Assembly (NCBI GenBank): GCA_043228905.1
Contig: JBHGNT010000152.1
Span: 558-64,557 of the forward strand
Direction of reading: 5' to 3'
Length of the DNA stretch: 64,000 nt
Origin: Azolla caroliniana
Taxonomy: Eukaryota > Plantae > Polypodiophyta
Both the position numbers and the translations under genes were made by a program. The notes under the pieces are model-generated. The model had not been told where the DNA came from, did not search any database, and saw only the letters and a list, made by a program, of their open reading frames with translations. Below are positions 5,225 through 57,956 of this stretch, piece by piece. How positions within the stretch are numbered: position 1 is the stretch's first letter; the number at the start of each line of letters is the position of its first letter.

Positions 5225-5324
5225 GATGAATTGAAGGGTTTTGTTCCAACATGCATGAAAGAGGGTTGTTCTTAACGTTTATCAATTTTTCGGACTAGCT
5301 CTGTTGAAGAGCTCGTATGAGAGT

Positions 5325-5492: not shown

Positions 5493-5525
<33 letters not shown>

Positions 5526-6426: not shown

Positions 6427-6499
6427 TACCTACTACTGGATTCGAACCAATGACTTTCGCCGTATGAAAGCGATACTCTAACCCCTGAGTTAAGTAGGT
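6427..6499 (-). tRNA. trnM(CAU): tRNA-Met(CAU), plastid-like
   Basis: ACCTACTTAACTCAGGGGTTAGAGTATCGCTTTCATACGGCGAAAGTCATTGGTTCGAATCCAGTAGTAGGTA resembles the plastid elongator trnM, and lies opposite the atpB fragment as in plastomes. Confidence 0.9.
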
Positions 6500-8014: not shown

Positions 8015-8051
<37 letters not shown>

Positions 8052-13364: not shown

Positions 13365-14759
13365 ACCATTGAAAACATGTAATGAGCTGGGGTCAAGAGC
13401 TGTTAGACACTTTAGCAGCACACACCCTACATCGCAGAATCGAGTAATTGGTAATCCATCGTTCGAATGCTTAATGATTCTAATATTGACAATGAGACCT
13501 GCCAAAAAAAAAGAAAGCGAGAATTCGATTCTGGTGTGAATTTGGTGCTACGTGAATTTAATGAAGAAAGTTCGCACTCCCTTCCCTACTGATAATTGGG
13601 GGCATCTGAGCCCGCCCCTCGGACATGGGGGCACAAAAGCAGCACAAAAAGCACTATACCCTCCCTGTCTAACTTGTTAAAAAACAACGGAGTAAGTCTT
13701 TGCCGGCATTGTTAAGTCATTGGAAAAAGACACCTAACAACAATGAAGATTCGTTTCCAGAGAGTTTATTCACCGTTGCTCCTGGAGAATACTCTGCAAA
13801 CAACAAACCGTGCGTGCCCTTTCAAGGTTAATCTCAACGATGAAGCGGCTAGCTCGACTCCATCGATCCTGTGTACAATGTCTCAGATTACAGGCCTTCG
13901 CTGTGGCGGAACTTGATGACCTGGACTGCGAAGAGCCCTATAGTGACGGCGATAGCGAAGCAGAGGTTGAAGAATTTCTTTTGCCTGCTTCTAACTTTAT
14001 TATCAAGAATAATGTTCTGGCGGTCAGCGTTAGATAAATCTCATAAGAAATATATTCAAATAGGAATTTGTACGTTCAAACCGTGCGTGTGCCAATTGCT
14101 CGAAGAAGCAAAGGTTAAGCTTGAAGCCGAAGAAAAGAGAGGTAAGGAAAGATTAATGATAAGCGATGGATTGGGCCAAACAAATTCGGCGGATTTCTTG
14201 AGAAGGAAGGAATACTTGCAAAAAATGATCGAACAATTTGTTGACGAGAGATCAATCTATAATAACTCGCTGGACCTTTTTGATTGATAAGCTGACCAAC
14301 AAAAGGCAAACCAACATGCAGGATAGGTTTATTGCGCACTTCAAGAAAGATAAAGAACTAATAGACATTTTAACGTCCTTCGATGTATATACGATTGAAA
14401 TACTTACGATATTTTAGAATCTTTATTGTTAGATTGTTTATTAATAGGGATTGCCTCTTTTCCAGAGTCTAAATTATTATTATTAAAATCTTTACCGTCA
14501 GATTGTTTATCAACAGAGATTGACCCAGACTCAGATTTTCTTGAGTCTGAATTAATCGAAAAACAAAATAGCCACGGCCTTTACCATTAAACTTACATTA
14601 TAACACTTTTTTTTCAATTTCAATATCTCATTTTCTAATGCTATTGTATGACAGCAGAAAAATTGCGGTATAAATGAAAATATTATTAATACAAAGAAAA
14701 CCTTGTTTTCTTCTTTGATCAAACAAACTCATATCTTTAAATAATAAACGAATTCTAGT

Positions 14760-14960
14760 TTGAATAGAATCTAAAGCTACTTTTGCTTTCATTCACCAAA
14801 AGCAGCTGCTTTGGTTGCGTTGGTTGTTAACCATTTTAAGAGAGTGTATAAGGACCTACCACTCTATACGGCGGTGTACGATTGCTTCATATCAAACTAC
14901 AAAGTATCTTCACTATTACCAGATCTATATAAATCAACCCTGTTCGGGTCTTTAGGTTGT
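14760..14960 (+). pseudogene. Fossil of a mitochondrial linear-plasmid (phage-type) RNA polymerase, C-terminal motif
   Basis: SKATFAFIHQK...VALVVNHFKRVYKDLPLYTAVYDCFISN resembles the NFIHQKDA...PLYTVHDxF motif C region of plasmid RNA polymerases. Recognised from memory, not from a search. Confidence 0.65.
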
Positions 14961-15343
14961 CCGATGGCAACCAAAGCGTCTTTCTATTGTTCCCCGAACC
15001 ATTCGAACTCTTTTACCAGATTCTTGGCAGTCCCTTTCCCAAAGAAAGTTGGGAAGTGCAGTCTCTGCAGGCAGGCAGTTAGCCCCTCGGGTCGTTCAGT
15101 CTCGAAGGTATGGTTCGGGCTTCGTTCGTTTCTTGTGACCAGATTCATTGGTTCGAGGCTACGTACGTTGGATCGGGTTCGGGCCCTAAAATATGTGATT
15201 GGGTAATTACGATGGCTCGTATACACGTTCGAGGATCACTCTCCAGGCGACGGAGGACTGCTTAGTGATTGAAGGGAGAGAAGAAACCCATTTGATTTCT
15301 CACTAGAGGCCTAATGATTGCATAACTCTGAGGTTCCAACTGC

Positions 15344-15429
15344 TACGGATAGAGGGATTTGAACCCCCACGACTGAGTAAGGTCACCAGAACCTAAACCT
15401 GGCATGTCTACCAATTCCATCATATCCGC
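15344..15429 (-). tRNA. trnL(UAG): tRNA-Leu(UAG)
   Basis: GCGGATATGATGGAATTGGTAGACATGCCAGGTTTAGGTTCTGG...GGTTCAAATCCCTCTATCCGTA; long variable arm; native mitochondrial type. Confidence 0.93.
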
Positions 15430-15556
15430 ACATCGATTCTTATTTCGAAACCACCCTTTTTCACTGCTAACTGGATAGAGCTAAGAACGCCAATGGCTCG
15501 GATGGCGTAGCAATTAGAGGAAACTGAAACACCACCCCGTATTTTTCGATTCTCCC

Positions 15557-15588
<32 letters not shown>

Positions 15589-15734
15589 ACGCGCGACTTG
15601 CTCAATGGAGCCCGCTTACGACGATCCCTTTTAACCTCTCAGGCTCTTATAGAAGGCTTATAGAATGCCTATATGCTTTCCAAATCAAGTTAGGGTGATG
15701 GGAAAGTGGGAATGCTAACTTATGACCATACTCA

Positions 15735-15821
15735 CGGATGGAGAGGGATTCGAACCCCCGGTATCTCTCCGAATACTTCGGTTTTCAAGACCGACTCTTT
15801 AAACCGCTCAGACATCCATCC
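15735..15821 (-). tRNA. trnS(UGA): tRNA-Ser(UGA)
   Basis: GGATGGATGTCTGAGCGGTTTAAAGAGTCGGTCTTGAAAACCGA...GGTTCGAATCCCTCTCCATCCG. Confidence 0.93.
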
Positions 15822-16039
15822 CTTTCCCGACAAGATCACGAGCCATCAATAATCAACGGGAAAGCGTGCCAAGCTTTCAGGTCTTTGTAAATCGCACGCA
15901 ACGCCTTCAGAAAACAAATAGGTTGTACCGCAGGGCCTCCTCTTTGGCCCCTCCGACCAGAAAGGTTAAGCGTGGTAATTGATCATTCTATTTTAGATTG
16001 ATAGGAACTAAGGCGTCCTAATAACCAAGTTTACAACCA

Positions 16040-16112
16040 TGGGCAATAACGGACTCGAACCGCTGACTCCCTCGGTGTAAACGAGGCGCTCTACCAACTG
16101 AGCTAATTACCC
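16040..16112 (-). tRNA. trnV(UAC): tRNA-Val(UAC)
   Basis: GGGTAATTAGCTCAGTTGGTAGAGCGCCTCGTTTACACCGAGGGAGTCAGCGGTTCGAGTCCGTTATTGCCCA. Confidence 0.93.
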
Positions 16113-17142
16113 GGAGTGCCGGCGATACTTCGGAGTCTCGCCGGCTCTGTTTTCTGTAGGTCACATAGAAATTTATCCATTCTTTCTACGGCCACGTCAA
16201 TCCGCTTCTTTTCTTGTTGGGCCGCGCCGCAATTGTCTAGCTTCTGCTACCAACTCCCCCATCGGGCCGTCTGACTTTACCGTAGCCGATAAGTAGCGTT
16301 AATCGTCTTCATCGCGCTGATGAAGCAGCGGGTTCATCCACCACCTTGGTTCTTCCCCGCAAGCAACTTCCGCCGTATTATCCATAGCTGTTCATCAAGA
16401 AGGCCTAGAGTTAGTTTTCCGATAAGATTCAAGCTACAATTTCAAACAGCACCTTTTCTTCATGAAGCGCAAGAAAACTGCACTGCGGAAGAAGAAGAAG
16501 CGGTAAAAAGTGTAATATAAATGGCTACCAAAGTTCTTCTTTTGAACTTTCAAGAAGGCCTGAATATTCATGGATTATTATACGATAATCTTTAATGCGG
16601 CTCAGATTGCGGAAAGAATTGAATGCTGGAATTTCGAAATTCCGTTGGTAAAATTCAGAAGGATCATGCAAGAAGGCAATATCATCTTCTGGCCATAATC
16701 TGCGAATCCAGCAAAGCAAAGCAAAGCAGCACTTTTCTTTTCACTTTAAACCGAGCCGGCGGCAATCTTGATGAATCACTGGCAAGAAGATGCTTTGCAC
16801 TTTTCTTTCCACTTTAAAGCAGCAATCTTTGAACTCGGAAATGGCACTTTTCCCTGCAAGCCTGAAACGCACGCCTTCCCCAAAAGAAAAGCGGAACCAC
16901 CTAACGAGTATTTTAAACAGCAAGCATGATGAACCGGCATGTTCATCAAACCAAACAGGTTCTTCATGCATGCATGAAGGCCTTCATGATGATGAAAACC
17001 GCTTCATTGGAATGTCACCGTCTCATTGACAACACGAATGATAACGAATTGACAATATGAATAGTCACGTTAGTTTCCCATTCTTAAGCATGGATTATTA
17101 TACAATAATCTTCATTTGCTTTTTTACTGTTGACAACATGTA

Positions 17143-30697: not shown

Positions 30698-31728
30698 TAC
30701 GCTGGTCGGCTTCACAAGCAAGCTGCGGGTCTTTTTCAATCACTAATTCTTATTTTGCCCAAAATCGTTGTCGTTGGTTCACATTTTATGGCATCGCAGA
30801 AATTGATTGTAAGGCTTTAGATTATTTCAAAGGGTGGCCTAAGGTCACCCCCCTTAAATGAGAGTCCCGCCTCTCTTCATTTAAGCGGGAAAAACGTTCT
30901 GCTGGCTGGGTAACATAATGGCAATGTATTGGACTGCAAATCCTGGAATGACGGTTCGACTCCGTCCCTAGCCTATTCTTCTTCCAAGCTCTTTTGCCAT
31001 TTCCGAGTGAAAAGATTGCTGCTTTAAAGTGGAAAGAAAAGTGCAAAGCATCTTCTTGCCAGTGATTCATCAAGATTGCCGCCGGCTCGGTTTAAAGTGA
31101 AAAGAAAAGTGCTGCTTTGCTTTGCTTTGCTGGATTCGCAGATTATGGCCAGAAGATGATATTGCCTTCTTGCATGATCCTTCTGAATTTTACCAACGGA
31201 ATTTCGAAATTCCAGCATTCAATTCTTTCCGCAATCTGAGCCGCATTAAAGATTATCGTATAATAATCCATGAATATTCAGGCCTTCTTGAAAGTTCAAA
31301 AGAAGAACTTTGGTAGCCATTTATATTACACTTTTTACCGCTTCTTCTTCTTCCGCAGTGCAGTTTTCTTGCGCTTCATGAAGAAAAGGTGCTGTTTGAA
31401 ATTGTAGCTTGAATCTTATCGGAAAACTAACTCTAGGCCTTCTTGATGAACAGCTATGGATAATACGGCGGAAGTTGCTTGCGGGGAAGAACCAAGGTGG
31501 TGGATGAACCCGCTGCTTCATCAGCGCGATGAAGACGATTAACGCTACTTATCGGCTACGGTAAAGTCAGACGGCCCGATGGGGGAGTTGGTAGCAGAAG
31601 CTAGACAATTGCGGCGCGGCCCAACAAGAAAAGAAGCGGATTGACGTGGCCGTAGAAAGAATGGATAAATTTCTATGTGACCTACAGAAAACAGAGCCGG
31701 CGAGACTCCGAAGTATCGCCGGCACTCC

Positions 31729-31801
31729 GGGTAATTAGCTCAGTTGGTAGAGCGCCTCGTTTACACCGAGGGAGTCAGCGGTTCGAGTCCGTTATTGCCC
31801 A
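31729..31801 (+). tRNA. trnV(UAC): tRNA-Val(UAC), IR copy
   Basis: Copy of 16040-16112. Confidence 0.93.
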
Positions 31802-32019
31802 TGGTTGTAAACTTGGTTATTAGGACGCCTTAGTTCCTATCAATCTAAAATAGAATGATCAATTACCACGCTTAACCTTTCTGGTCGGAGGGGCCAAAGA
31901 GGAGGCCCTGCGGTACAACCTATTTGTTTTCTGAAGGCGTTGCGTGCGATTTACAAAGACCTGAAAGCTTGGCACGCTTTCCCGTTGATTATTGATGGCT
32001 CGTGATCTTGTCGGGAAAG

Positions 32020-32106
32020 GGATGGATGTCTGAGCGGTTTAAAGAGTCGGTCTTGAAAACCGAAGTATTCGGAGAGATACCGGGGGTTCGAATCCCTCTC
32101 CATCCG
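32020..32106 (+). tRNA. trnS(UGA): tRNA-Ser(UGA), IR copy
   Basis: Copy of 15735-15821. Confidence 0.93.
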
Positions 32107-32252
32107 TGAGTATGGTCATAAGTTAGCATTCCCACTTTCCCATCACCCTAACTTGATTTGGAAAGCATATAGGCATTCTATAAGCCTTCTATAAGAGCCT
32201 GAGAGGTTAAAAGGGATCGTCGTAAGCGGGCTCCATTGAGCAAGTCGCGCGT

Positions 32253-32284
<32 letters not shown>

Positions 32285-32411
32285 GGGAGAATCGAAAAAT
32301 ACGGGGTGGTGTTTCAGTTTCCTCTAATTGCTACGCCATCCGAGCCATTGGCGTTCTTAGCTCTATCCAGTTAGCAGTGAAAAAGGGTGGTTTCGAAATA
32401 AGAATCGATGT

Positions 32412-32497
32412 GCGGATATGATGGAATTGGTAGACATGCCAGGTTTAGGTTCTGGTGACCTTACTCAGTCGTGGGGGTTCAAATCCCTCTATCCGTA
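32412..32497 (+). tRNA. trnL(UAG): tRNA-Leu(UAG), IR copy
   Basis: Copy of 15344-15429. Confidence 0.93.
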
Positions 32498-32880
32498 GCA
32501 GTTGGAACCTCAGAGTTATGCAATCATTAGGCCTCTAGTGAGAAATCAAATGGGTTTCTTCTCTCCCTTCAATCACTAAGCAGTCCTCCGTCGCCTGGAG
32601 AGTGATCCTCGAACGTGTATACGAGCCATCGTAATTACCCAATCACATATTTTAGGGCCCGAACCCGATCCAACGTACGTAGCCTCGAACCAATGAATCT
32701 GGTCACAAGAAACGAACGAAGCCCGAACCATACCTTCGAGACTGAACGACCCGAGGGGCTAACTGCCTGCCTGCAGAGACTGCACTTCCCAACTTTCTTT
32801 GGGAAAGGGACTGCCAAGAATCTGGTAAAAGAGTTCGAATGGTTCGGGGAACAATAGAAAGACGCTTTGGTTGCCATCGG

Positions 32881-33081
32881 ACAACCTAAAGACCCGAACA
32901 GGGTTGATTTATATAGATCTGGTAATAGTGAAGATACTTTGTAGTTTGATATGAAGCAATCGTACACCGCCGTATAGAGTGGTAGGTCCTTATACACTCT
33001 CTTAAAATGGTTAACAACCAACGCAACCAAAGCAGCTGCTTTTGGTGAATGAAAGCAAAAGTAGCTTTAGATTCTATTCAA
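32881..33081 (-). pseudogene. Plasmid RNA polymerase fossil, IR copy
   Basis: Copy of 14760-14960. Confidence 0.65.
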
Positions 33082-34476
33082 ACTAGAATTCGTTTATTAT
33101 TTAAAGATATGAGTTTGTTTGATCAAAGAAGAAAACAAGGTTTTCTTTGTATTAATAATATTTTCATTTATACCGCAATTTTTCTGCTGTCATACAATAG
33201 CATTAGAAAATGAGATATTGAAATTGAAAAAAAAGTGTTATAATGTAAGTTTAATGGTAAAGGCCGTGGCTATTTTGTTTTTCGATTAATTCAGACTCAA
33301 GAAAATCTGAGTCTGGGTCAATCTCTGTTGATAAACAATCTGACGGTAAAGATTTTAATAATAATAATTTAGACTCTGGAAAAGAGGCAATCCCTATTAA
33401 TAAACAATCTAACAATAAAGATTCTAAAATATCGTAAGTATTTCAATCGTATATACATCGAAGGACGTTAAAATGTCTATTAGTTCTTTATCTTTCTTGA
33501 AGTGCGCAATAAACCTATCCTGCATGTTGGTTTGCCTTTTGTTGGTCAGCTTATCAATCAAAAAGGTCCAGCGAGTTATTATAGATTGATCTCTCGTCAA
33601 CAAATTGTTCGATCATTTTTTGCAAGTATTCCTTCCTTCTCAAGAAATCCGCCGAATTTGTTTGGCCCAATCCATCGCTTATCATTAATCTTTCCTTACC
33701 TCTCTTTTCTTCGGCTTCAAGCTTAACCTTTGCTTCTTCGAGCAATTGGCACACGCACGGTTTGAACGTACAAATTCCTATTTGAATATATTTCTTATGA
33801 GATTTATCTAACGCTGACCGCCAGAACATTATTCTTGATAATAAAGTTAGAAGCAGGCAAAAGAAATTCTTCAACCTCTGCTTCGCTATCGCCGTCACTA
33901 TAGGGCTCTTCGCAGTCCAGGTCATCAAGTTCCGCCACAGCGAAGGCCTGTAATCTGAGACATTGTACACAGGATCGATGGAGTCGAGCTAGCCGCTTCA
34001 TCGTTGAGATTAACCTTGAAAGGGCACGCACGGTTTGTTGTTTGCAGAGTATTCTCCAGGAGCAACGGTGAATAAACTCTCTGGAAACGAATCTTCATTG
34101 TTGTTAGGTGTCTTTTTCCAATGACTTAACAATGCCGGCAAAGACTTACTCCGTTGTTTTTTAACAAGTTAGACAGGGAGGGTATAGTGCTTTTTGTGCT
34201 GCTTTTGTGCCCCCATGTCCGAGGGGCGGGCTCAGATGCCCCCAATTATCAGTAGGGAAGGGAGTGCGAACTTTCTTCATTAAATTCACGTAGCACCAAA
34301 TTCACACCAGAATCGAATTCTCGCTTTCTTTTTTTTTGGCAGGTCTCATTGTCAATATTAGAATCATTAAGCATTCGAACGATGGATTACCAATTACTCG
34401 ATTCTGCGATGTAGGGTGTGTGCTGCTAAAGTGTCTAACAGCTCTTGACCCCAGCTCATTACATGTTTTCAATGGT

Positions 34477-35169
34477 TCACCGCCACCTATAATGCGCGAA
34501 ACTTCTATTGGCCTCTGCCGGTTTATGAAGATCATCCCTTCTTTTACGAACATTTCCCTTTCTTTGATAAGCATCCGGTATCTCAGCAGATGAACATTAA
34601 TCCAAGCTCTGGCTATTTCTGCTCATAGTACGTCATTTGACAGCTGCTTCCATGATCCGACGAAAAGCTAAGGTTTCTTAACGTTCTTTGGCAATAATCT
34701 TGAGTACATTACGAGTAGTCCCTGCGATTCTCACTTTCTTGATTTCGCGAGTAGGCTTGACATTCTCTATGGCGTTAGCCAGGAGTGTGATAACATGAAC
34801 ATCGGGTTCAGTTCAGGAAAGACGAGAAGAAGTTTAGGAAACAATAACACGAGATTTTGTTCTTTTACCATCAATCATACAAAAGTGGACTAATTTCTTG
34901 ATTAATCTTTTTTGTTTATTATCCACTCCCCAGATGTAGCTTAATCTCTCCGAGCAGCTGTATGTGCTTCCTTCACGGCCTCCCTTGGGTCTGGGTGACA
35001 AAAGCCCTGCTAGATGGGCGCAGAAATATTTGCAATGGGATCGAAGCGGATGGCTTTCCGTTCCAAAAGTTTCCGCCGGTCATTCTGAAAGTCTTCCCGA
35101 AAAATTAAACCGGTCTGAAGGCGATGAGCGAGAAAAGCAACCATTCCCTGATTTGACCTTTTTATTCGT
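34477..35169 (-). CDS. rps7: Ribosomal protein S7, IR copy
   Basis: Reverse complement of 12672-13364. Confidence 0.93.
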
Positions 35170-35546
35170 ATCGAATTCTTAGGTTTCTCTGTACCATGTT
35201 TTAGTCTGCCTCATCTTCAATCCGGGATTCCCTACGAATCTTTAACTCCTCGAATACGATGATAATTCACACCTAACGAATCTTTCACTCTACCTCCTCT
35301 AGCCGTAACCGCAGGATGCTCCTATGAATTATAACCCTCGCCAAAGATGTGAGCAATGATATTCCTTCAATTGCTTGAACGTGCCTTGGCTATCTTGCAT
35401 AAAGCCAGATTAGGTTTTTTTAGTGTTCTTGTCGAAACACGCGGGCGTACCCCAAACTTTTAGAGACATTAATTCGAAGCTCAAGTACATGTTTTGTGAC
35501 GTTTTGCCCTTCTACAATGACGAAGCAATTAATTTATGGTAGGCGT
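35166..35546 (-). CDS. rps12: Ribosomal protein S12, IR copy
   Basis: Reverse complement of 12295-12675. Confidence 0.93.
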
Positions 35547-36005
35547 ATTTCGCAATCTGTGTTTTTCCTTCTGCGTGCGGCCCCGAAAAGCGTTCATCAT
35601 GCATCCGCCCGCTTGACACAGCACTCACCCCTTGACATAACCGAACGATTACCTTTCGGTTGGCGGTAAATCGTTTAGGTCAAGCAACCTGGACTCGCCA
35701 CTACCGTACCTAGGGCCGTCCATTGCGATTATGCCGAGGGCGTCTGCCGTAAGCCTAGCAAAAGAAGAAGATATTGTTGTGATCTGGGAGGCGCGCGCCG
35801 TAGTAGCTGGGGTATCGGTTCTTTCCTCCTTTTATTTTCCCGGTCGGTGCTCTCACCCTCGAAGAAGCATCGATCGGACGATCGCAAGGCGGCATTCTGT
35901 TTACGAAATTTCCATCGGCGGGCGTGCGTGAGAGGGGTCTGGACGCCGTTTTCTTCCGACCAGAACCCCATTAATTATGACGTTCAACATCACAGTATGC
36001 TCAAT

Positions 36006-39000
36006 TCATTGAGGTAGCCAGTCAAAGGCTACTGGAACGCCGAATACAGAAACTACCCGAGCTAATGATAAAGGCGGGAAGACTTTCCGTCCAAGTCTCA
36101 TTGGTTAATCATAACAATGTCATAGAAATGCTGCGCAAACCCATATATATACGAACGGAAAGAAAATAACCTTTGTGCCAAACCAGATTGAGCCCGGAAT
36201 TCCCTGGAAACTAGGAAGATCTAAAATGGATGGCCAACCTCCCGGGAAAGGCGGTGTACATAGACTAGGAGAGTGAGGGCGCGGCTCTGTGGCCCTTAGC
36301 CCAATAGGTGTATCCACACCCTTCTCAAAGAACCGTACGTGACACTCTCGCGTCATACGGCTCCGTCCCGGGAATATTGAGTTTCCTCTTCTCCAACCAA
36401 TGCAACGTTTAGGTCTTCGAATCCGATCTCTCTCTCGCATGGATGTCTCGGTGGTGGTTGGCACAGCAGCAGCAGAGTGGGATCGACTTACAGTTCAGGC
36501 TGGCCTACAAGGCGGTTCATCAAACCCGCCAACCCCTTTTTCATCATGAAGGCCTTCATGATGAACCGGTTCATCGGCTTAGAGCCCGCATAGACGGAGA
36601 AAAATCTCTAAAGTGAGTGAGTCCCCAGGAGAACAATGAGAGGTAGGTGGTCAAAGGCCGAGCGAGAAAGTTCCTGCCTGCCTGCCTGCCTGCCTGCCGG
36701 GGGGAGAGATTGAAGCCACTCAACCTACAGAAAGGGCAGCTGAAAACAACCAACCGGGTTTGTGCTTGCTGCTGATAAGCACACTTTCTTTAGGTTTTAA
36801 CCCAGCAGAGAGAATGCGATAGCATTAAAGTGGGTTGGCTACCAGACCAGGGTACTCCTCCCTCCTCTAACTTGGAATTGATAGCGGAGCGTTAGTAGGG
36901 AGCTGTGAGATACGGTGCTTTACCTTCTGACTCCGAGAACGAATTTTTGGAAATAAACAGTACCATCACTTCTCCCGCGGGCTCGAGCAAGGCGCCTGAC
37001 AAGAGGCGCAGCGAGTCTTTCTCCGACCATTCCAAAAAGATCCCCTTTAACGTAACGTAACGAACAAGTTTTCAGCAGAAATCCCTCTTCGCTGGGGGTT
37101 AAGTCGCCTGGTTCAGACTCAATTTGCTCATGGGACGCCAGTAGCAAGCAAGCAAGCAAGCAGTCTCTCGTCCGCAACAGGAGTACATGGGGCTGCCGTT
37201 GTCTCGGTGATTCTGTTTTGCTAGCCTTTCAGACTAGTGTCTACCACTGTTGTTGGTGAGTCTTCTCTCCCAGGACCAGAATGATTACCCCTGTCCAATG
37301 AGTTTACATTCATCCCTGGATGTCGGGTACTGTTTCCTTCCCCGCCATCTTTGTAGCCGTCACCTGTAATCCGTGCAAGTGTGTCCGCACCCCCTGGAGG
37401 AAACGAGAAGGGATTTCTCGGAGCAACCCTCCCTGGTTCCAGACCTAAGAGCGCACTTTCCCATATGAGCATTCGATAGTATAGGTCTGGGGAAGAGTTG
37501 CGGGATAACCACCTGAGATATCCTCCTAATCTTAGATAGGTCGTCCGACGGGTTCGCGGTTCATTGCTGTGCTTACACACCAGGCTACCCCTCTTCGAAA
37601 GCTTCGCGGGACCTACTAGTCTTCAGATCGTCGCCCGGAGGAGTTTACTGCACAAAGCCCTTGAGGGGACGCTGGCTCCTGCAGGGAGCGGAAGCCCAAC
37701 GAATGTCGGATGCAAGGCTCCGCACCTCATTAAGATCGTATTAGCATATTCTCCCGAAAGAGAGGGAGCAAATCCCATTAAAAGATATTCCGCATTATAG
37801 CCCACGACTGATTCAACTTCTACTTCTAGTAGATCAGACGGAGCTCGATTAGTTTCTACTGAGCGAAAGATAGAAAACAGAATCAATACGGAGAACAAGA
37901 GAATGCGAAACCATATCTGCTCTTACGCTATGACAATCTCACTAAAATTACAAAAACCTACACAAATTAGTGCAGTAATGATAATAGGACCAATAGATAC
38001 TTCGTACAAAACCATTTAGACGGCAAATCATGATACTCCTGAAAAAGCATATTTGGAATAAGGAGTGAAGCTGCTTTTCCACCAATCAACAGGATCAGTG
38101 TACGCTGAGTCCTCTCCGAACCATACGAGCACGTCGCCGCGCATACGGCTCTCTACCCCAACAACTTGCTTTAGATCGCCCGGGAAACCCGCCCGTCGAT
38201 GTTCCTTCCGTAGAGGCACATTGACACGTGGTTGGCGGGGAGGGCAAAGCCGTACGTGATAGTCTACCACCATCTGGCTTTCTTTTTCACTCCGAGAGGT
38301 CCGACGTAGTTGCAGGGGTTCGTCGTCTCCTGCTTCTCTGTCGTCCTCTTTAGTTTAGCGGAGTGGAAAATTCTGACTCAGCGCCTTCATGATGAACCGG
38401 CGCGCGCGCGCGCCTTCATGCATGATGATGAAAACCGCTTCTTTTCTTTTCTTTTCTTTTCTTCGGCCGCCATAAAGCAATGCTTTATAATACCTCGCTC
38501 CGTACCCTTCCGTCCCGTTTGGGCTTGGTTCTGGCCCCCCTCGAGTACGCCCGTTCTTGGCGGTCGTCCTCGTGGTTCGTTCCCAGCAGGCAGGACTCGA
38601 GAGGAGCGGGCCGGACGTCATAAATCCAGGTCCTGCGGTCTAGCCTTAGCCCTCGGTAAGCAGATCGATCGCTTCGTGTTCTCTCTCTGAATTTTGTGGT
38701 ATGTCCTGTTCTTTTAGTTAAAACTGCTTGCTGGAGATCCACCAAACGACGATCAATTCTATTCCGCATTGAGTCAGGTTTCGGGGATTCGAGTTTGCAG
38801 ATTGCGTTGAGTAGAATCTGCCGAAGCTAGGCAGACATCCAGACTCCTTTCCTGCTGCTAGAAGAAAACAACGTGGAAAAAGAAATAAAGACTTTCCTCT
38901 TCCCTGAAAACTAGCGTCTTCCCCGTGCGTGCGTGAGGGGCCCCTTTCGGGGCGGGTACTATGAGTCCTCTGACTACCTGCCAGAACAAAATCTGGCTGG

Positions 39001-39789
39001 GTTTCGCCGGTATCACCTACGGCTCTCATCCCAGATGTCCTGGAATGCAGTAAATCGGGATGTCGTTCAGTCTCTTGTCCCCAAGAGGATGGGTAATGTG
39101 CCTTCATGCAATGGTTGCTCCAATCCGATCTGGCCGGCAAGCAATCCCAGCTGGCAGAAAACAAGACAGCGTACAGTCGTTCGCTCGGCACAGAGGTACA
39201 AGGATAACTGTAGGTCGTTGGCTACCCAAGGAGACTTCAATTCGCTAGGACGGCACCTCATCCTGATCCACAAGGTTGGTTCTTCCACATGGTGTTGTTA
39301 GGTACTCCCTGGGAAGACAGGATCGACCTTCAACCATGCTTTTACGGCATGCTCTTCCTTTCTTCCTGAACTTCTTTGAACGTATCCCTATCCCCTTTTA
39401 GCCTCCTACACAAGAACCCCCCCTACCCTTCAAATCGCGAGTCAAGCCTATTACTAGTTCTGTCGAAGAGCCCTACACCCTGTATAGAGCAGATCATTCC
39501 ACACTACAAACAATTTGACCACATGGGCGGGCCGGGCTGGCTGCTTTAGTACCACAGGTGACTGAACGGCCGCCCTACTAGACCGACCCACTGTAATAAT
39601 CCCATAAACCCCTGGAGAAGATATAGCAAATAGATAGAATGTACCTACATTTGGATCCGACAATACCATACCATAATCAGAAAGTGTAACAGCCCGAGCA
39701 ACCAAACTTAAATAGGGGTCAGTCAATGCTGCCCTCCAAACCGTACGTGGCAATCTTTTGTCATACAGCTCTCACTCGGAACACCTTAA

Positions 39790-39826
<37 letters not shown>

Positions 39827-40834
39827 GAGAGTATTGCCGTCCCTTCCGTTTCGAAGAATTGTTCCTTATTCTCAACGCCGGCCGGCCGCATACGTACTGG
39901 CCGCGTTGAACTAAGGTTTGTTCTGACTAGTTGCCTTCGCGGCTCGGCCAGGTTTCTGGCATTCCTCCCTCGCTACTATGCGACCTCTGAGACCGCGCAT
40001 CGTTTACTAGACAATGCGAAGCGGTTACTTCCCGTGGTTGCTCTCTTTTCGTGTCTTTGCCTTTCGAGGACGGAGTAAGCGCTACGCACTTCCCTGCTTC
40101 GCCCCGTCAGAGCACCCAATGGTTACAGGTCTTTGCGCACCTGCTCGATTGTTTAAGTCAGTTCCTATGCTGGAATTACTTGTGGCTGGCTGTCCGGCAA
40201 CCTTGACCGCTTCATGTGGAAGTCAAGGCTTTCGCCCAAACTGGGCCCTGGATTACTCCGCCACACACATACTGACGTATTCTGTTCGGGATACGTAGCC
40301 CTTACTCAGGCAGTAGGTACGTACCAAGTGAGTCAATCTAACCTTTCTCGCATCAGCTGAGAGACACCACCGAGGAGGGCTAAGCCGTCCTTCCTTCGGG
40401 GACCGGGGAAACCGCTTTGCCCGGCTTCGCCCCTTTCCGACTAACTGCTCGCGAACTCGATGGATTATTAGCCCAAGATGTTGTATTGGCCCGCCGTATA
40501 TACTTCCAAGTCAAACATCTATGTTGGTTGTAGAAGGGTATTCTTCCGGAAAGAAAACGAGCCTCGCACGGCGCACCGTAGATGTAATTACCAGAACCAT
40601 TACAGAAAGAAAGAAATTAGCACTTGGAGGTGGAATAGGTTCTTTTAAAATTGATTTCAAACCATCCGCTAAGAGTTATAACAACCCAGATGATCCCACC
40701 ACATTAAGACCCTTTCAACGTTACATGGAAGCCATGACTTTACGTTCGACTGACACTGGAAAGACTACTCCTGGTAAAAGTAATATGATGATTCCAAAGA
40801 TTTTAGCTAGGAGACGAAGGATATACGGCTTCGT
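36006..40834 (-). CDS. nad1: NADH dehydrogenase subunit 1, IR copy (4 exons, 3 group II introns)
   Basis: Exons 40577-40834, 39576-39711, 37726-38059, 36006-36267. Confidence 0.96.
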
Positions 40835-41341
40835 TTCGTCAACTAAGATAGGTTTCAAGAAAATGCCTTCAAAGCAGCATTAGAGGGACTTGCGTTGGCT
40901 TTCTTTGCCAACACAAGGTCTGTTCTTGATATTTATGGCAGTTCTTTCTTTCGTTGGCCGTTAGCGGCGGAAAAAAGTAGTCAATGAAATAATGTCACTT
41001 GATAGGCCTCTGACAACGACGTTGCCGACAACCAACCTCTTGAGAAAGGTAGTAAGGATCAAGGTGTGGATGATGTTATTGATGTTGCGACCCAGACCGA
41101 CATGGATGGTATTGATGTAGGAGTTCAGACGGATATCTTATTATACCAGCAGGTGCAACTACTCAATTTATTGAATTCTTACCGGGCCGTAAAGAGCAGC
41201 TCGGCATTGAGGGAAAGCAGGAACCCACCCCACGAGTTTCCTTGAACAGTCTGCAGGAATTGACAGAAAATCTTGTAGATAGAATGGCCGCCTTGACTTC
41301 CGAGGCTCGATGAAACGGGCTGGCTGCTATGAAACTGCCCA

Positions 41342-41414
41342 ACCTACTTAACTCAGGGGTTAGAGTATCGCTTTCATACGGCGAAAGTCATTGGTTCGAA
41401 TCCAGTAGTAGGTA
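41342..41414 (+). tRNA. trnM(CAU): tRNA-Met(CAU), plastid-like, IR copy
   Basis: Copy of 6427-6499. Confidence 0.9.
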
Positions 41415-42120
41415 ACTTGATTTTTCATGCATGGTTTCACTAACCAAGTACCGAGTTCCGTGTTTTCCAGCTTGCATTCGTCGTGAGCCAGAGCCAGTCC
41501 TTTGTCGATGGAAGACTCGCGGATGAAGCGGTTCATTGCTGCTGCTTTCGTTCCGATACAAATTAGATAGACCGAGCACTATACATGCCGCTATTGCTTC
41601 TATGAAATAAAGTAAATGGGGGGAAGGTCGACCCGCTTTCTACCAGGCGTGCGGAAAGCGATGAAAACCTAACTAAACTAAAGGTCCAATTTTCTGGCTG
41701 CCTTATGGTTGAAGCAATGTTCGGTGGCCCGGCGACTAGTGGATGTGGGACGTGTAACTATCCGATTCTGAAACGAACGCCGATGGTCTCATTGACCCAA
41801 TTTACCGAGAGAGAATTCCGCTAACCATCGTAAGGTGATTAGGTCTGCTGGTTTTCATCGGGGCGGTCCTATGAGATGATTAGAGTGTATCTCATCACAT
41901 TCCAGATCTATCAAATAATCGATTGTAAAAGAGTAATGGATACGGAGAGTTTGACTCATTGAGAGTAGGGCGCAGAAAGTCAAGTCTTGCGATACTTCTC
42001 AAGCCAGCCCTTCGTGGTGCCTGACGGAATTGTCTAAAGCTGTTCTCGGCTCTGGTAACAGAGTTCGCTCCGAAGCTGTCTTGGCTTTTTTTTTGGCCCT
42101 CACCGCCTCATGAAGACGAA

Positions 42121-42315
42121 TGAATGGGCCGCATAGATATTCTTCTGCTAATCTTCTCGAAAGCGGCGCAGTAGTAGCATCTAGGTGTGCAAATGGTTGT
42201 AGCGGGGGCTAGGTCAGTCAGATCATCCGCAGGTGCGCTTGAATGGAAGTTATTGATCTGGAATTCTTTCCTATAGAGACCTGGCCGGCCGGGAAGAACC
42301 AGTTGATAACCCACG

Positions 42316-42348
<33 letters not shown>

Positions 42349-42516
42349 ACGGCCGAAGAAGCGGTTTTCATCGGCATTCTACCTGCCAAAAAGAAAGCAG
42401 AGACTTCTGATTCCGCGATTTTGGGCGAAGCGGAAGATGTTGTCAATGAATAAAGGTACAGCTTGCTCGTTGACATCTCGGAAATATTCTGCCATTGTTG
42501 GGGCTAGGTTGAGCCA
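42121..42516 (-). pseudogene. atpB: Plastid atpB fragment, IR copy
   Basis: Copy of 5325-5720. Confidence 0.88.
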
Positions 42517-42616
42517 ACTCTCATACGAGCTCTTCAACAGAGCTAGTCCGAAAAATTGATAAACGTTAAGAACAACCCTCTTTCATGCATGTTGGAACAA
42601 AACCCTTCAATTCATC

Positions 42617-42664
42617 ACGGCTTACAGTCTACCGGAATAACCTGCCATTATTCTATCGATTTCC
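42617..42664 (+). pseudogene. atp6: First 16 codons of atp6 captured at the IR border
   Basis: ACG GCT TAC AGT CTA CCG GAA TAA ... ATT TCC, followed immediately by TAA and accD-like DNA. Confidence 0.85.
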
Positions 42665-43215
42665 TAATGGATGAAGACATGACTGCATGAGATGTTCCAA
42701 GTTTCTCCGCCGCATGAACCGCCCCGCCGCTGAGGATTCTCATCAGAATCGTATTACTGCTTCCCAGAGAAGAACAGGTTTAACTGATGCTGTTCAAACA
42801 GGTATAGAATATTTCAATGGGGTATAGTATAGCGCTTGGTGTCATGGACTTTTAATTCATGGGAGGTAGTATGGGTTCCGTTTTAGGTAAGAAGATCACT
42901 CGCTTAATTGAATATGCCACGGATAAGTCTTTGCTAATAATCATTGTCTGTGCTTTCGAAGGGGCACGTATGCAAGAAGGGACGTTGAGCCTAATGCAAA
43001 TGGCCGAGATTTCCGCCGCGCCGGCCGTCAAGCCGTTCTACAGATCCATCAAGTTCAGAGAAGATTATTCTATATATCAGTTCCCACCTATCTAACTACG
43101 AGTGGTGCTACTGCTAGTTTTGGTATGTTAGGGACATAATTATCGCTGAGTCCGAGGCATACATAGCATCTGCTGGGAAAAGGGTAATTGAATAAACGTT
43201 ACGTCAAAAGATATC
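42665..43215 (+). pseudogene. accD: Plastid-derived accD fragment
   Basis: MDEDM...EDSHQNRITASQRRTGLTDAVQTGI...[25 protein letters not shown]...[15 protein letters not shown]...ASFGMLG.IIAE; frameshifted. Confidence 0.9.
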
Positions 43216-43460: not shown

Positions 43461-44585
43461 TATAAATACAAGAAAAGAAGGGAATCTCACGAAACAGATT
43501 AGATAAAACATGGACATTATCAAAAAGTTTACAGAACGAACTGGAAAGAATACAGAACAAATTGGAAAGATTACAGCAGGCAGGCAGGCAGGCAGGCAGG
43601 CAGTTTGACGAAGACATTATCATAAACTTAGTTCGTTTACAGAATGAATTGCACGAGGATTCATCATGGCGATTCTTCGAGAGAACGACGCGGAGCTGTT
43701 ACCGTTCTTTTCCGTAAAAACTTTTCTTCTGTTCTTGTCATTTTCGATCCTATAATACTTCGGGGCAGGGTCCGCCCCCGAAATTTAGTTGTATCAACCT
43801 AACCTTCTGCGCTAAACTAAATTAGAGCAACGAAAGTTGGTTGCTTTAGGCGAGCAACCTTGCCTTATTCTCTATCGGAGCGGGTCTTCCCCCGACAGCA
43901 AGCAATTGTCCGTCGCATACATAAATGAATATCGATATTACCACAAAATACAAAAAAGAAAAGAAGAATGCAATGAAATTGCTGATATTGTCCAAATAAA
44001 AAAAAGCACTAAGGCATATTTGGTTTGGTCATCTTTAGAGAATAATTCAGCTGGCAGTAGCTGAACTTTACCTAGTTGGTTGCTTTAGGGGATTAATTCC
44101 CTTATTCTCTATCGGAGCGGGTCTTCCCCCGAGAGCAAATGTCCGCCCCCTTTCCCCTCCGAGATTATGAGAAATGTTTCCCTTGCAAATATCAAGAAAT
44201 TGAGTTGGTCGGCTCCTCCCAGGGCGGGCGGGGTCCATCTCCATCATCTGCAACACAAGAGAAGATCTCATATCTCTCTTCAACGGTGCTCCTGTCTCGT
44301 CTAAGGTAAGTCCTATAACCACCAAACCTTGTGCTCTCCCCTTCGCTATCACGTCTCTGTATCCTTTAGAGCGTATAGAATCCTCCAACATGTCACCAAA
44401 CAAAATGTAGGTCAGGGGCTCTATAAAAATAGGATTGCTATCGCTGCCGCTTCTTCCTATAATAAGAGTTAGGGTGTACGTAAAGTTTAGGAAATGTCGG
44501 CTTAACGTTTTGCAAATTCAGAGGCGGCTCAAGTAACAAGAGTCAAAGAATGTATATGATACTAACCGTACATTTTTTTTGTTGG

Positions 44586-44646: not shown

Positions 44647-44969
44647 CCGCGGATGAAGCGGGGAGATTTACCCATTTCCGGAAGAAGCCGGCCGAAGAAA
44701 AGAAGCGGTTTTCATCATGCGGAAGCGGAAGCGGAAGCGGAAGCGGAAGCGGAAGCGGAAGAAGCGGTTGTCTTTCACTCATATGCCAAATCAAATCACG
44801 TTGGACTATAGCCCATCAATCAGTGAAGAATGAACTATCGTGCTTATTTCAAGCAAGCTCCAATAATTGATGAAAGAACCCATAGGTTGGTTTCCCGAGT
44901 CACGCATCGCAATATACTGGGCTTTCTAGTTCGGGGTTTAGCGATTTGCAATGTAACTTTTTGGGAATT

Positions 44970-45300
44970 CGTTTTGGCGTGGGTTACTGGACATGCTAGT
45001 TTGATGTATCCCATTCGATATCTTCGAACCCGAGAGTCGGTAAACTTGACTCCACAATGCTTACGAGAATTGGAATATTCTTCTTCATTATCGACAGATC
45101 GGTAGTTTCCGCCCCCGAATATTCTTTCACGAAATGAACCATCTTTCTCTGGTTTATGAGTCTTGTAATGCAACGTAGAAGGTTAATCAACTTGCCCAGG
45201 TCTCCATTCCATTAGGTAACTCTCTTTCGGCCCAACTGCGAATCTGTTCAGGAGAGGACAGTCCATCGTAAACAGCCATCCTTGATTATTCACGATGATC
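44970..45300 (-). pseudogene. rpoC1: Plastid-derived rpoC1 5' fragment
   Basis: GLSSPEQIRSWAERELPNG...[20 protein letters not shown]...[26 protein letters not shown]. Confidence 0.9.
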
Positions 45301-46559: not shown

Positions 46560-50336
<3,777 letters not shown>

Positions 50337-50983
50337 TCCCTTTCTCTTCCGTCGAATCCCTTTCCTCGGCACTTTATACCCAGGGCAGTCTCCTGCATTC
50401 ATGGCAGTTCCTAGCAAGAAAGAGATGGGAAAGGGAAGTAACCTCACGACGAGGTGAACCATGTCATTGATATAGAGGGGAGGGATCGGACCTTCCCCCA
50501 GTGTTGGTTTGCATTATAAAGAAAGTAAGTTTTGACAGAATAGACTGGGTGAATGAAGCGCTAAAGCCGTGTATCCGTAGCTATGCAGAGACGGAGAGAA
50601 ATAGATATATACAACTGAAAGGTGAGGGACTACGCGGAGGGAGGGCATCCACATAGCTCTAAATCATAGGATCAAATTCCAGAGTGAGCCCCGCAGTGCA
50701 ACTACCTTTCGCGGAGCCGACTCTTTCGATCGATTGGCAAAAAAAAATGGATATTTGTCGTATGGAGAAATTGGATGAACGAATAGACGAGTAAGGTATT
50801 AACTAAACTGCAATTATTCTAATTTGAGTCGACTTTTTCCATTCCATCTCCCCGCTTCGCTGCTCTATTCGGGTTTATTCCTTCGCCTTGCTCGAGCCAA
50901 GCCTTCCATGACCTGCTGGGCTGTAGGACCAATCCAAACCTTCTGACGTTGGTGAGTAGAGACAAATAGCTCTATGGTGGTAT

Positions 50984-54375: not shown

Positions 54376-55018
54376 TTACTTCATTAAAAGGAAACCGACC
54401 ATTCTTTCTCATGAGAACCCATATATCATCCAGGGCGAAAGTCTTATGTAGTGTCTTGCTAAAATACCTTGGCGTTGTGAAGGATTTTTTTCTTTACAAT
54501 CACTAGTTTAATAGGAAATAACTTTATTCTTTTTCTTTTCTAAGCTGTTTTTGTTACGAACCAATCTGTTGCTTACTGCCTGCGCGGATACGGGCCTTCG
54601 AGCAAGCAGTGAACGCAGCACCAGTCAATTCCTCGCCGCCGGCTTCACCCGGATGAACCGCTTTCAGGCACGACTTACGGGCAGAGAGTTTCTACACCAT
54701 CCTCTAGGGCCCATATCCGCTCGCGAGGACCGACCTGGAAAATCAGTACAAGTTCTTCAAAGATATTTTAGCAAGGGACAAACTAAATCCTCAGGTCGGG
54801 TGGGATGGCACTACTGGCAAATACTGTCTGGCAAAGACGCAGGCGCGAAGCGTGGTAGGCCCGCTAGCGTTTTTTTTGCTTGCCGAAAGCATACAAGAAA
54901 AGCCGGGTATATACGGGAACCGACTCCTTGTTGTTTTTGCAACCATAGGAACTGCCATGAATGCAGGAGACTGCCCTAGGTATAAAGCACCGAGGAAAAG
55001 AAACAGATTGGATAAGAC

Positions 55019-57956
55019 ATGCCCATAGTCATAAACAGCTTAGAAAGATTATAGACCGAATTGCACGAGGACATCGCAACTCTTTAAAATAACAACGAAG
55101 AGTTGTTCCCGCAGGTGCTCCTCAATCTGTCGTAGAATACACTACCCGATCTTTCGGGTGGCCTAGAAATCCTGAAAGATCTAGAAGTCTCTTCGGTTGT
55201 GGAACTGATTATTGGATTTTAGGATTTCTTCATTCCGATTGTATTTGCAATAGGATTCATCTCCCTTACATTGATTATAGTAGCCAAGACTCTTTCATGT
55301 ACAAACCGTTTCGTGTAAAGATGGCTATTTTCTACGAACTACAAAGATATAGGTACTCTACACTCAATCTTTGGTGTCACGGCTGGAGTAATGGGCACAC
55401 GCCTCTTAGTACTAATCTGTATGGAATCAGCATAACCCGGCCATTAAATTCCTGGTGGAAATCATTAACCTTATAATGTGTTAATAATCGCTTACGCTTC
55501 TTTAACGACATCCCTTCCGGTTACGCTGGCGATGACAGGTGGATTCGGTAACCGGTTCGTTCTGATTCTTACAGGTGCACCTGACACGGCATTTCTATGA
55601 TTAAATAATATTCTATTTCGGTTGTCGTCATCTTTGCTGTTGCTTTCATCAAGTTTAGCCTCAGTAGAGGTGGGTAGTGGCACTGGGTGGACGGTTAAAA
55701 AGGCCGTGCCCTGTGGAGACATAGGGAACAGTAATTCCGCTCGATGCAGGAACGTCCTCGCTACAGAAAAAAAGGCTAAGCCGGGCCGCAGGCCTTCAAC
55801 AAAATCCAAACTGCTATATGCAAAAACCTTTCCCACAAGGGGACAACCTGCCTGGGAGGGCGAATCTTCCCTCCCATCAGAGACTCAATGCGGAATATCT
55901 ATCACTCTGCGGATAGCTTGTGGGTGTGAGCTGCTTCAGCAGGCAGCATCGTGCTCTAAGACGCGAGTACAACCTGAGTCTCCCTATTGCTTGCCCAAGG
56001 CAAATACAATCTACAGATCCTTTACTACGTCAGGAAGATGCTTAATGTAAGGTCTGTCAATGCGGCGCATAAGATCATGGGAGTGTATCAGATCGAAAGA
56101 TGCTAGCTTTTTCTTATATTTGGTCAATATCCATACTTGATTAGTAAGCATTTCTATTGCGAGGGAGTTCGTAAAGCCAGCCCATCAGGTATTAAAAGAT
56201 CCAAAGCAGCAGCTCTCAATAGGGCACAAGTGCTACATCCGTAAAGATTCAAGGGGTGCTACTCTTCTAGAGACTTGTGTCAATCTCGGAGGTATGGCCG
56301 CTGACCTTGATCGGCTTACCGGCTTTATAGAGGCAGAGAGACCTCATACAGGAAGGGCAGAAAACAAGGCGCTTCCCGAACCGAAGAAGAAGAAGCGGTT
56401 GGCCGAATTGGCCTTTATCAGGGGCTATGGGACGAAGGCCACATATTCTTACTCAGCCGCCCGCCCTTCATGCTGAAGCCGCTTCTTTTCTTTTCTTTCT
56501 TGCGCGCCCTTATTGATTCAAGACTGTCTACAGTGGGACAGTGCTTGGTACAAGTTAGCTCTTCTAAAGCGATTCGTATAAAATCACTAGAGCTGAAGCT
56601 CCGGTCAAGGGCCATCCGCCATAAGAATAATCGGGAAAAGTTCGAGTAGACCTGAGGGATTCTCTAAAGGAAAGGCTTCATGACAGGATGATAGATAAAG
56701 GTACAGTCCGATCCATACAGAGACATATGGCGTATAGCATTAGGCAAACACAACCTGAGGCTATTTAACATATGTGCTATCCCCCTCTGAGTAGTATAAC
56801 CAGTCATTCCGGAGGAGCTGTTGATTTAGCCACTTCTAGTCTCTACCTATCAGGTGTTTTCTTTATTTTAGGTTTCATTAATTTTATAACCATTATCCTT
56901 AACACGCGCGGACCCGGAATGACCATGCATAGATTATCCCTATCCGTTCGGTTCGTTTCAGTGACAGCATTCCTACCTTTACCACCTCCTCTCGTACCGG
57001 CGGGTGCAATTACCATGTCATCAACCGATTGAAACTCTAATATCATCTCTTCTGACCCTGCTGGAGGAGGGGACCCTATCTTATACTAGCATCCTTCTCG
57101 GCTCCCCGGTTATCTAGAGGTTCATACTTTTATTCCGTCAGGACTTGGTATCATTAGTTATATCGTCTCCACTCTCCCCAGAAAACCTGTCTTCGGTTAT
57201 TCAGGCACGGTGTATGCCATGATCAGTATTGGAGTTCCTGGATTTACTGCTCGGGCTTATTATACGTCTACTGTAGGCTCAGACGTGGATACACGTGCCT
57301 ACTTCACGGCGGCCATCATGATTATTGTCGTGCTTATTGGAATCAAGGTTCCTAGTCGGATTGCCATCATGTGGGGAGGCTCAATATAATACAAAACACT
57401 CATGTCATTTGCAGTAGGGTCTACTTTTCCGTTTACTATAGGAGGACTTACTGGTATAGTCTCGGCTAATTTCGGGATAGACGTTGCTCTATATGATACT
57501 TATCACGTGGCTGCATATTCCTATCATGCATTTCTTACGGGAGCTGTTTCTGCTTTATTCGTAGGGTTCTACTACCGGATAGGTAAAATGCCTGGTCTTT
57601 AATACCTAGAGACTTCGGGTTAAATTTATCTTTGGATTACTTTCCTTGGAGCGAATCTGACTCTCTCTCTCACGCATCTCCCAGGTCCTTCGGGCATGCC
57701 ATGTTGCATCCCTGATTATCCAGATGCTTACGTCGGACGGAATGCCTCAAGTAGTTTCGGCCCTTATGTTCTCGTACCGGGGATCCCTCGTTCTTTTGTA
57801 GTAGTTTTCAAAACTTCGAGCAGTGGGAACAAGTGTGCTCTAAGTCCTCGGGCTGGTGAATAGAATTCAACCACATTCGAATGGATGGTATAAAGCCCTC
57901 CAGCTTTTCATACTTTTGGAGAACTTTCAGCTATCAGGGAAACCAGTCTTAAGCAA
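55019..57956 (+). CDS. cox1: Cytochrome c oxidase subunit 1, 2 exons, editing-dependent; probable N-terminal extension
   Basis: Conserved part begins at 55301 ([19 protein letters not shown]). Exon 1 ends 55695; exon 2 56777-57956 (CAA edited stop, or TAA at 58005-58007). The nearest in-frame upstream ATG is at 55019. Confidence 0.9.
55696..56776 (+). other. Group I intron cox1i395g1 with LAGLIDADG remnant
   Basis: Splits GWTV/YPPL after a U and ends in G; insertion at nt 395 of the conserved frame; [10 protein letters not shown] motif at about 56310-56340. Confidence 0.88.

Follow-up and report, generated by a model that had tools for sequence, protein, structure and literature searches.

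A 94-codon upstream frame opened by U-to-C editing and shared with cox3 as the likely start of mitochondrial cox1 in Azolla caroliniana

The mitochondrial cox1 gene of the fern Azolla caroliniana lacks a usable start codon at its conserved N-terminus and is likely translated from an AUG 94 codons further upstream, at position 55019 of the stretch of DNA analysed here (hereafter the window; 64,000 nt from contig JBHGNT010000152.1 of assembly GCA_043228905.1). In DNA the frame leading from this AUG into cox1 is interrupted by stop codons which are converted to Gln codons in RNA. The same upstream segment precedes cox3 in sister contigs, and Cox3 is probably also made from the shared AUG, with a membrane-anchored N-terminal piece.

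The sequence of the window is that of plant mitochondrial DNA from a hyper-editing type of fern: the conserved genes contain numerous in-frame stops, and tRNAs and domains of group II introns are also present. Exon 1 of cox1 spans 55301–55695 in the canonical numbering (features are on the + strand unless stated otherwise) and begins with codon 1 of the liverwort-based numbering, ACA at 55301, which C-to-U editing cannot convert to AUG. No in-frame ATG or ACG is present within 55022–55333, and the gene does not have the AUG or ACG start that is canonical in land plants. The ATG nearest to the canonical start, at 55297, does not share the cox1 frame. A sequencing frameshift bringing it into frame was ruled out, as neither RNA nor eight independent DNA contigs contain an indel there. 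The first in-frame ATG at or after the canonical N-terminus is found at 55391–55393 (codon 31), within the first conserved helix. As there is no usable cox1 start at or near the canonical position, ribosomes most likely start at AUG 55019.

The remainder of the gene is conventional in structure. Exon 1 ends at 55695, 395 nt after the codon 1 position, consistent with the group I intron cox1i395g1, for which position and name were taken from published work (PMC10027690). The intron comprises 1081 nt (55696–56776) and is spliced out in RNA, with the joint between 55695 and 56777 found in all three RNA runs described below (X4, X8, and X6). Exon 2 (56777–57956) ends at CAA 57954, which is the edit-created stop of the published table (cox1eU1483; PMC12548569). 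With cox1i395g1 removed, the conserved Cox1 sequence follows the canonical gene model.

The 94-codon extension frame occupies 55019–55300, is in frame with cox1 from its ATG (55019–55021), and is open in RNA after editing. Exactly four in-frame stops lie between the ATG and 55301, namely TAG 55052, TAA 55085, TAG 55133, and TAG 55220, and a TAA at 55013–55015, two codons before the ATG, closes the frame on its 5' side. An earlier reading of this DNA, made from the sequence only, had identified ACA 55301 as the position of the usual start and the in-frame ATG 94 codons upstream, and had translated the intervening frame across the same four stops into an acidic part followed by a hydrophobic helix of ~20 residues. 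The codons, stops, and translation are exact, and charge count and hydropathy agree with the two-part structure. Residues 1–68 are acidic with 11 Asp/Glu versus 2 Lys/Arg, and a transmembrane helix is predicted for residues 70–89 (55226–55285), the Kyte-Doolittle maximum of the extension at 2.76 (19-residue mean), followed by Lys, Arg, and Arg within 11 residues. As in a presequence, this N-terminal stretch is in frame with cox1 and has no counterpart in orthologues.

Editing was assessed by comparing assembled contigs with the window. The RNA samples were X4 and X8, which are strand-specific on record and originate from one study, and X6, an older run from a second study which is presumed to be RNA; X1, a probable DNA run, was used for comparison. 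Dense C-to-T and T-to-C changes are present in exon 2 in the RNA runs and X1 has none. The RNA contigs include the leader upstream of the ATG and continue into cox1, and the contigs of the extension are approximately as deep as those of exon 1. In the major RNA contigs of three runs and two studies, U-to-C editing has replaced all four stops by Gln codons, which is the outcome the sequence-only reading had proposed. TAG 55052 becomes CAG in X8 and X6 (X4 has no coverage there), while TAA 55085 becomes CAA and TAG 55133 and TAG 55220 both become CAG in X4, X8, and X6, with T in DNA at each position. Two other sites are edited in the same three runs, a silent C-to-U change at 55072 (GAC to GAU) and a U-to-C change at 55206 that converts CTG to CCG (Leu to Pro). 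X8 record 26, which covers 54948–55297, differs from DNA at six positions, all of which are C/T changes and none of which lie upstream of the ATG; the 71 nt ahead of ATG 55019, including the in-frame TAA, are unedited. In X6 the edited form accounts for a k-mer depth of 229.6 of 235.9 and a low-depth unedited form is also present. The edited form is the only one in the contigs of X4 and X8, although contig assembly drops minor variants.

The probability that these differences represent plant-to-plant variation between the sources of RNA and DNA is very low. The run identities are coded, and the organism label shared by X4, X8, and X6 differs from that of the best DNA run, which would allow for a strain difference. 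However, every change is T to C or C to T, an unedited form occurs at low depth within X6, and the spliced exons display the dense edits expected from the published table. The strongest comparison comes from further DNA. A junction 26-mer led to seven contigs in public metagenome assemblies and a protein look-up added three more (L001–L010). Two of these, L006 and L003, carry the intron indels of the RNA runs (additional TTGC after 55986, GGATA after 56409, and TTCTT after 56482, and a loss of 4 nt at 56175), and L006 is identical to the window over 54853–55985 with T at all four stops. T is also found at 55052 in X1 and in every DNA contig that covers it (L001, L003–L007, L009, and L010), these eight coming from as many assemblies. 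Since DNA of the RNA runs' own intron haplotype has T at the stops, the C/T differences are RNA editing and not strain variation. Each of the four stops reads T in DNA and C in RNA of the same genotype, as stop-removal sites do.

Selection on a translated frame would be expected to give this distribution of edits, for which other explanations are difficult to find. None of the in-frame stops is left and no edit is found upstream of the AUG, with one amino acid change and one silent change in addition. If five T-to-C changes were placed randomly on the 85 T's within 55022–55297, all four stop T's would be hit with P = 2.5e-6. Some plant mitochondrial genes have been suggested to use non-AUG starts, and cox1 could instead begin near its canonical N-terminus at GUG 55313, or at one of the in-frame AUU, AUA, AUC, or UUG codons in 55235–55277. 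The upstream region would then be a 5' untranslated region (UTR), with edits that are neutral or a collateral effect of a very large editing machinery. GTG 55313 is in frame, and starts produced by GCG to GUG editing are mentioned as rare (PMC12548569). Edits in 5' UTRs also exist, such as the five upstream of cox1 in Haplopteris ensiformis, two of which are efficient (0.90 at −121 and 0.85 at −104; PMC10027690). However, UTR and silent edits are usually inefficient (PMC12548569; PMC10027690), and a non-AUG start would not account for the editing of each in-frame stop in the major RNA species (four in the extension and two at the cox3 junction described below), for the lack of edits upstream of the ATG, or for so improbable a placement of edits. 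A start of this type is therefore considered unlikely.

Editing continues across the boundary into cox1 itself. X6 record 19 extends without a gap from 55022 to 55406, from the extension into cox1, passing through TAA 55316 (codon 6), which presumably represents the Gln codon of other plants' Cox1 N-termini. Within 55298–55406 this record differs from DNA at seven positions, of which at least five lie upstream of 55391 and at most two beyond codon 31, based on sites predicted from the sequence. The predicted edits upstream of codon 31 would restore residues conserved in other Cox1 proteins. By this prediction the conserved Cox1 N-terminus appears to be edited like coding sequence. The published table lists only 55400 in the same span (PMC12548569).

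This difference can be traced to how the published sites are numbered. The curated edit tables for three Azolla species, Salvinia, and Marsilea are numbered from internal ATGs (PMC12548569). All 43 of the 43 published cox1 sites fit a C or T in the window only if position 1 is 55391, and all 13 of 13 published cox3 sites fit when numbering starts at the ATG of the MYMHSF stretch (L004:584). Position 1 of the Salviniales tables therefore lies ~30 codons inside the conserved protein for cox1 and ~33 codons inside for cox3. As a result of this internal numbering, edits of the true N-terminal regions are missing from the catalogue, which by the same numbering holds ~165 cox1 edits in Azolla and Salvinia species (PMC12548569). 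The sites of the extension are not listed in it either. A start of cox1 at ATG 55391, with all upstream sequence non-coding, would suit both the beginning of the published Table S5 coordinates and the position of this codon as the first genomic in-frame ATG from the canonical N-terminus onwards. Such a protein would, however, lose conserved N-terminal residues (the RWLFSTN-KDIGTL region) along with part of helix 1, and at least five of the seven RNA differences noted above would lie ahead of its start. In the tables cox3 likewise begins with an internal Met, suggesting a convention of annotation. Initiation at codon 31 is thus very improbable.

The region upstream of cox1 recurs at a second gene. 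A segment of at least 800 nt, 54517–55316, is also located directly upstream of cox3, in frame, and ends at the T of TAA 55316. cox3 itself is absent from the 64-kb window, and its context is represented by seven contigs (L001, L004, L005, and L007–L010), with the cox1 context represented by the window, L002, L003, and L006. Positions 1–790 of L010 correspond to 54517–55316 of the window with a sole difference at 54639–54657. L001, L004, L005, and L009 show 100% identity over 54853/54781–55316 and then continue into cox3, as does L008, which is 100% identical over its 127 nt of the shared segment. The segment contains the leader and the entire extension with its ATG, and continues into the cox1 codons TNRFV (codons 2–6). 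Because the cox3 copy carries cox1 codons 2–6 and the T of the 55316 TAA, it was copied from the cox1 locus. With an identical segment ahead of different genes at two loci, this constitutes a shared 5' region, here among DNA relatives that are all nearly identical and belong only to the Azolla-like group.

In DNA the cox3 junction reads GTG-TGA-ATT-CAT-TAA-ATA-AAT-AAC-ACG, followed by the Cox3 N-terminus. An X8 RNA contig that leaves the window at 55315 matches this junction (30-nt read-out) and differs from six cox3-context DNA contigs at exactly two bases, giving TGA to CGA and TAA to CAA. The T of 55316 is therefore read as C in cox3-context RNA, and a second stop is edited 9 nt further on. 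The candidate ACG start of cox3 is unedited in this contig, the one RNA contig covering it. In L007 the junction (L007:1604–1640, reverse strand) has ATT-TTT in place of TGA-ATT, at equal length, and the frame is open and runs into cox3. The only other differences of L007 in the module are two indels, both upstream of the leader, and this contig probably belongs to another species in the same group. By editing or by sense codons, the frame beginning at AUG 55019 thus stays open into two genes. A search with the N-terminal piece of cox3 returned only near-identical contigs and Cox3 fragments from moss and other sources, with no RNA-derived fern proteins among them.

The four internal edits would also be accounted for by a stand-alone membrane protein of 99 residues, which would stop at 55316 (TAA before cox1, TGA before cox3) in transcripts unedited at that position, with Cox1 and Cox3 initiated separately. 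Stop-removal sites are on average less fully edited than sense sites (PMC12548569), and the breaks of the RNA contigs at 55297 and 55316 would agree with a mixture of forms. However, a break at 55316 is expected in any case from the repeat boundary. In cox3-context RNA 55316 reads C and the next stop, 9 nt on, is also edited, which such a protein would not need, and in the cox1 context X6 record 19 passes through 55316, where a stop of its own would have to be retained. In addition, cox1 would still be left without a start, and the codon 6 edit is needed for any start upstream of it, which fuses the two frames. This explanation is decidedly unlikely, but the 99-residue product can coexist as a minor product with translation from AUG 55019 into Cox1.

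If AUG 55019 is used, the cox1 mRNA would carry a 5' module common to cox3, consisting of an untranslated leader, the AUG, and the 94-codon frame leading into cox1. U-to-C editing turns the four stops and the TAA at cox1 codon 6 into Gln codons. Editing and splicing leave one continuous frame of 618 codons, from AUG 55019 as far as the stop that editing creates at 57954, and a ribosome starting at this AUG would read into cox1. The precursor of Cox1 would consequently bear an additional acidic segment of ~68 residues, one additional transmembrane helix, and a short basic linker. Following the positive-inside rule, the acidic segment would be predicted to face the intermembrane space and the linker the matrix. 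In established structures the N-termini of Cox1 and Cox3 face the matrix, and the charge distribution suggests that one topology could fit both proteins. Beyond this, the 94-residue segment may represent a new module that is retained on, or acts during the synthesis of, both Cox1 and Cox3. It could provide an acidic intermembrane space domain and an extra helix twice per complex IV, or a common handle for co-translational insertion and assembly. Its production would be gated by five to seven reverse edits, making the output of both core subunits depend on one set of nuclear editing factors. This role is proposed tentatively and is possible rather than probable.

The leader of the module spans 54946–54998 and is shared with the 5' region of atp1. 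These 53 nt match the reverse complement of 50361–50413, upstream of atp1, at 50 of 53 bases by blastn, forming an inverted repeat of 94% identity. The near-identity of the two leaders had been recognised in the sequence-only reading, which placed ATG 55019 about 57 bp behind the leader; the actual spacing is 20 nt, compared with 25 nt between the leader and the ACG of atp1. A remnant of the atp1 N-terminus was rejected as the source of the extension as only the 53-nt leader is common to the two loci, and a structured leader was likewise rejected, the fold z-scores of −0.9 and −1.4 indicating no significant fold. The atp1 5' region lies on the − strand at 50334–50413, with the leader at 50413–50361 and ACG at 50336–50334. 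Comparison of RNA with DNA reveals two C-to-U sites in this region, 50354 and 50335, the latter creating the start by conversion of ACG to AUG at 50336–50334. The former changes CGA to UGA at 50354–50352, six codons upstream in the same frame. The leader AUG at 50402 is in frame with atp1 and without a genomic stop, so that the CGA to UGA edit would close this upstream frame. This arrangement is the reverse of that upstream of cox1, with a frame closed rather than opened by editing.

The leader is also relevant to start-codon choice at cox1 as it contains two AUGs, at 54957 and 54961. The first of these opens a 23-codon frame (AUGCCCAUAG) that ends at TAG 55026–55028 and overlaps AUG 55019. 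This overlap could be irrelevant or could form a termination-reinitiation arrangement, depending on where the mRNA starts.

Several points weigh against translation from AUG 55019. As the two leader AUGs precede it, AUG 55019 may not be the first AUG of the mRNA. The module is identical in both contexts, hence the contigs cannot phase the edits with the cox1 or cox3 flank, and the edited contigs over 54948–55297 can be assigned to neither gene alone. Contigs also give no transcript ends, editing fractions, or minor unedited forms. No relatives of the extension were detectable, and it is invariant among the close relatives compared. Accommodating one more helix on each of two complex IV core subunits would be structurally demanding. 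Finally, the manually curated tables start both genes internally, and their authors did not adopt a model with an upstream start (PMC12548569).

The proposed arrangement combines known kinds of system, namely translation-enabling editing, presequences on mitochondrially encoded proteins, and 5' regions shared through recombination. Stop removal in Salviniales and hyper-editing ferns converts TAA, TAG, and TGA to CAA, CAG, and CGA (PMC12548569; PMC10027690), and the sites found here are alike in these conversions, in the organisms and genes concerned, and in the kind of site. They differ from the published stop-removal sites in lying outside the gene models and in opening a non-conserved frame instead of restoring a conserved protein. 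The cox1 annotation of H. ensiformis begins at an ATG ahead of the canonical start and has two edited stops in its first 20 codons (PMC10027690, Supplementary Data 2). Aligning the edit labels cox1eU103HY and cox1eC58*Q gives an upstream offset of ~14 codons. Compared through edit tables, Haplopteris cox1 resembles the gene described here in having an upstream start with edited stops, which by analogy would count in favour of initiation at AUG 55019. The Haplopteris extension is far shorter, however, and neither an extra helix nor sharing with cox3 is reported for it.

Angiosperm atp6 genes carry long, variable N-terminal extensions that are cleaved, and plant extensions of this sort originate by recombination with unrelated sequence. 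N-terminal sequencing of radish ATP6 was reportedly carried out by Krishnasamy et al. in 1994. In yeast, the Cox2 leader (Imp1/Imp2) and the Atp6 leader (Atp23) are presequences on mitochondrially encoded proteins (PMC8847149). Like the Cox2 and Atp6 presequences, the extension described here is an organelle-encoded stretch that is absent from homologues and lies ahead of a conserved polytopic subunit. Unlike them, it would be found on Cox1 and Cox3 in identical form, has a predicted transmembrane helix, and requires several reverse edits. If the segment were cleaved, it would resemble the yeast Cox2 and Atp6 leaders or the plant atp6 extensions.

The sharing of upstream sequence has a counterpart in Oenothera, where identical upstream sequences reportedly serve the transcription of both coxI and coxIII (Hiesel et al. 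1987, EMBO J). This concerns the same gene pair and an identical upstream segment of several hundred bases. The fern segment differs in that it includes an AUG and ~99 in-frame codons, reaching into the proteins beyond a promoter or UTR. Chimeric ORFs of the cytoplasmic male sterility (CMS) type are also produced by recombination of gene pieces with unknown sequence and are co-transcribed with normal genes, often as harmful extras beside intact copies. The joining by recombination is the same here, whereas the fusion appears to be the sole expressed form of two essential genes.

The origin of the extension differs from that first proposed. A 31-residue stop-free piece had no match among 1.84 billion representatives and pieces of 28 and 31 residues had none in Pfam, although such short queries make these blanks weak. 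The sequence-only reading had described the extension as recruited from a non-cox ORF family. As no outside relative was found and the cox3 copy carries cox1 codons, this claim needs changing, and the only related sequences identified are the cox3 copy and a degenerate paralogue. The paralogue (43488–43700) consists of the tail of the leader and approximately the first 32 extension codons, with a (GCAG)n run, an internal duplication, and a 5-nt frameshifting indel; its codon equivalent to TAG 55052 of the cox1 copy is CAG. An 82-residue stop-free piece of it gave an empty word search and only sub-threshold coiled-coil matches in Pfam, again a weak blank from a short query. The paralogue is flanked by ORFs that look plastid-derived by eye, one accD-like (42859–43095, +) and one rpoC1-like (44844–45173, −). 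An exact look-up with an exon-2 ORF returned no record, and no paper was found in the literature searched on a long N-terminal extension of fern cox1 or its sharing with cox3.

If translation from AUG 55019 is correct, the gene models for cox1 and cox3 of Azolla-type ferns are incorrect at their 5' ends, and at least eight sites are absent from the edit catalogues. Two core subunits of cytochrome oxidase would be under the control of a single AUG and a single set of stop-removal edits. In any organism, it would be unusual for complex IV to carry a 94-residue extension with a membrane helix on Cox1 and Cox3. The locus is also a case for two broader questions, how plant mitoribosomes choose start codons and whether translation-enabling edits act as gates on protein output.

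Other features of the window concern its repeats. At 54771–54907 (137 nt), upstream of the leader, contigs of all four runs exit the window at both ends, and this stretch seems to be a dispersed repeat with several genomic contexts. The SPAdes contigs L001 and L004–L006 end at 54853, within it. One contig of the X4 RNA run exits cox1 exon 1 after 55410 into sequence matching none of those compared and may be a recombination product or a chimeric transcript. A perfect inverted repeat of 11,670 nt (5177–16846 and 30995–42664) carries domains of group II introns as well as tRNA genes, and 583 nt of it are repeated at 46560–47142. Microsatellites of the form (GCAA)n or (CTTG)n, with 6–10 units, occur at ~31 places on both strands, often at repeat edges, with examples at 5484, 8004, 15545, 20949, 30116, 53862, and 59237.

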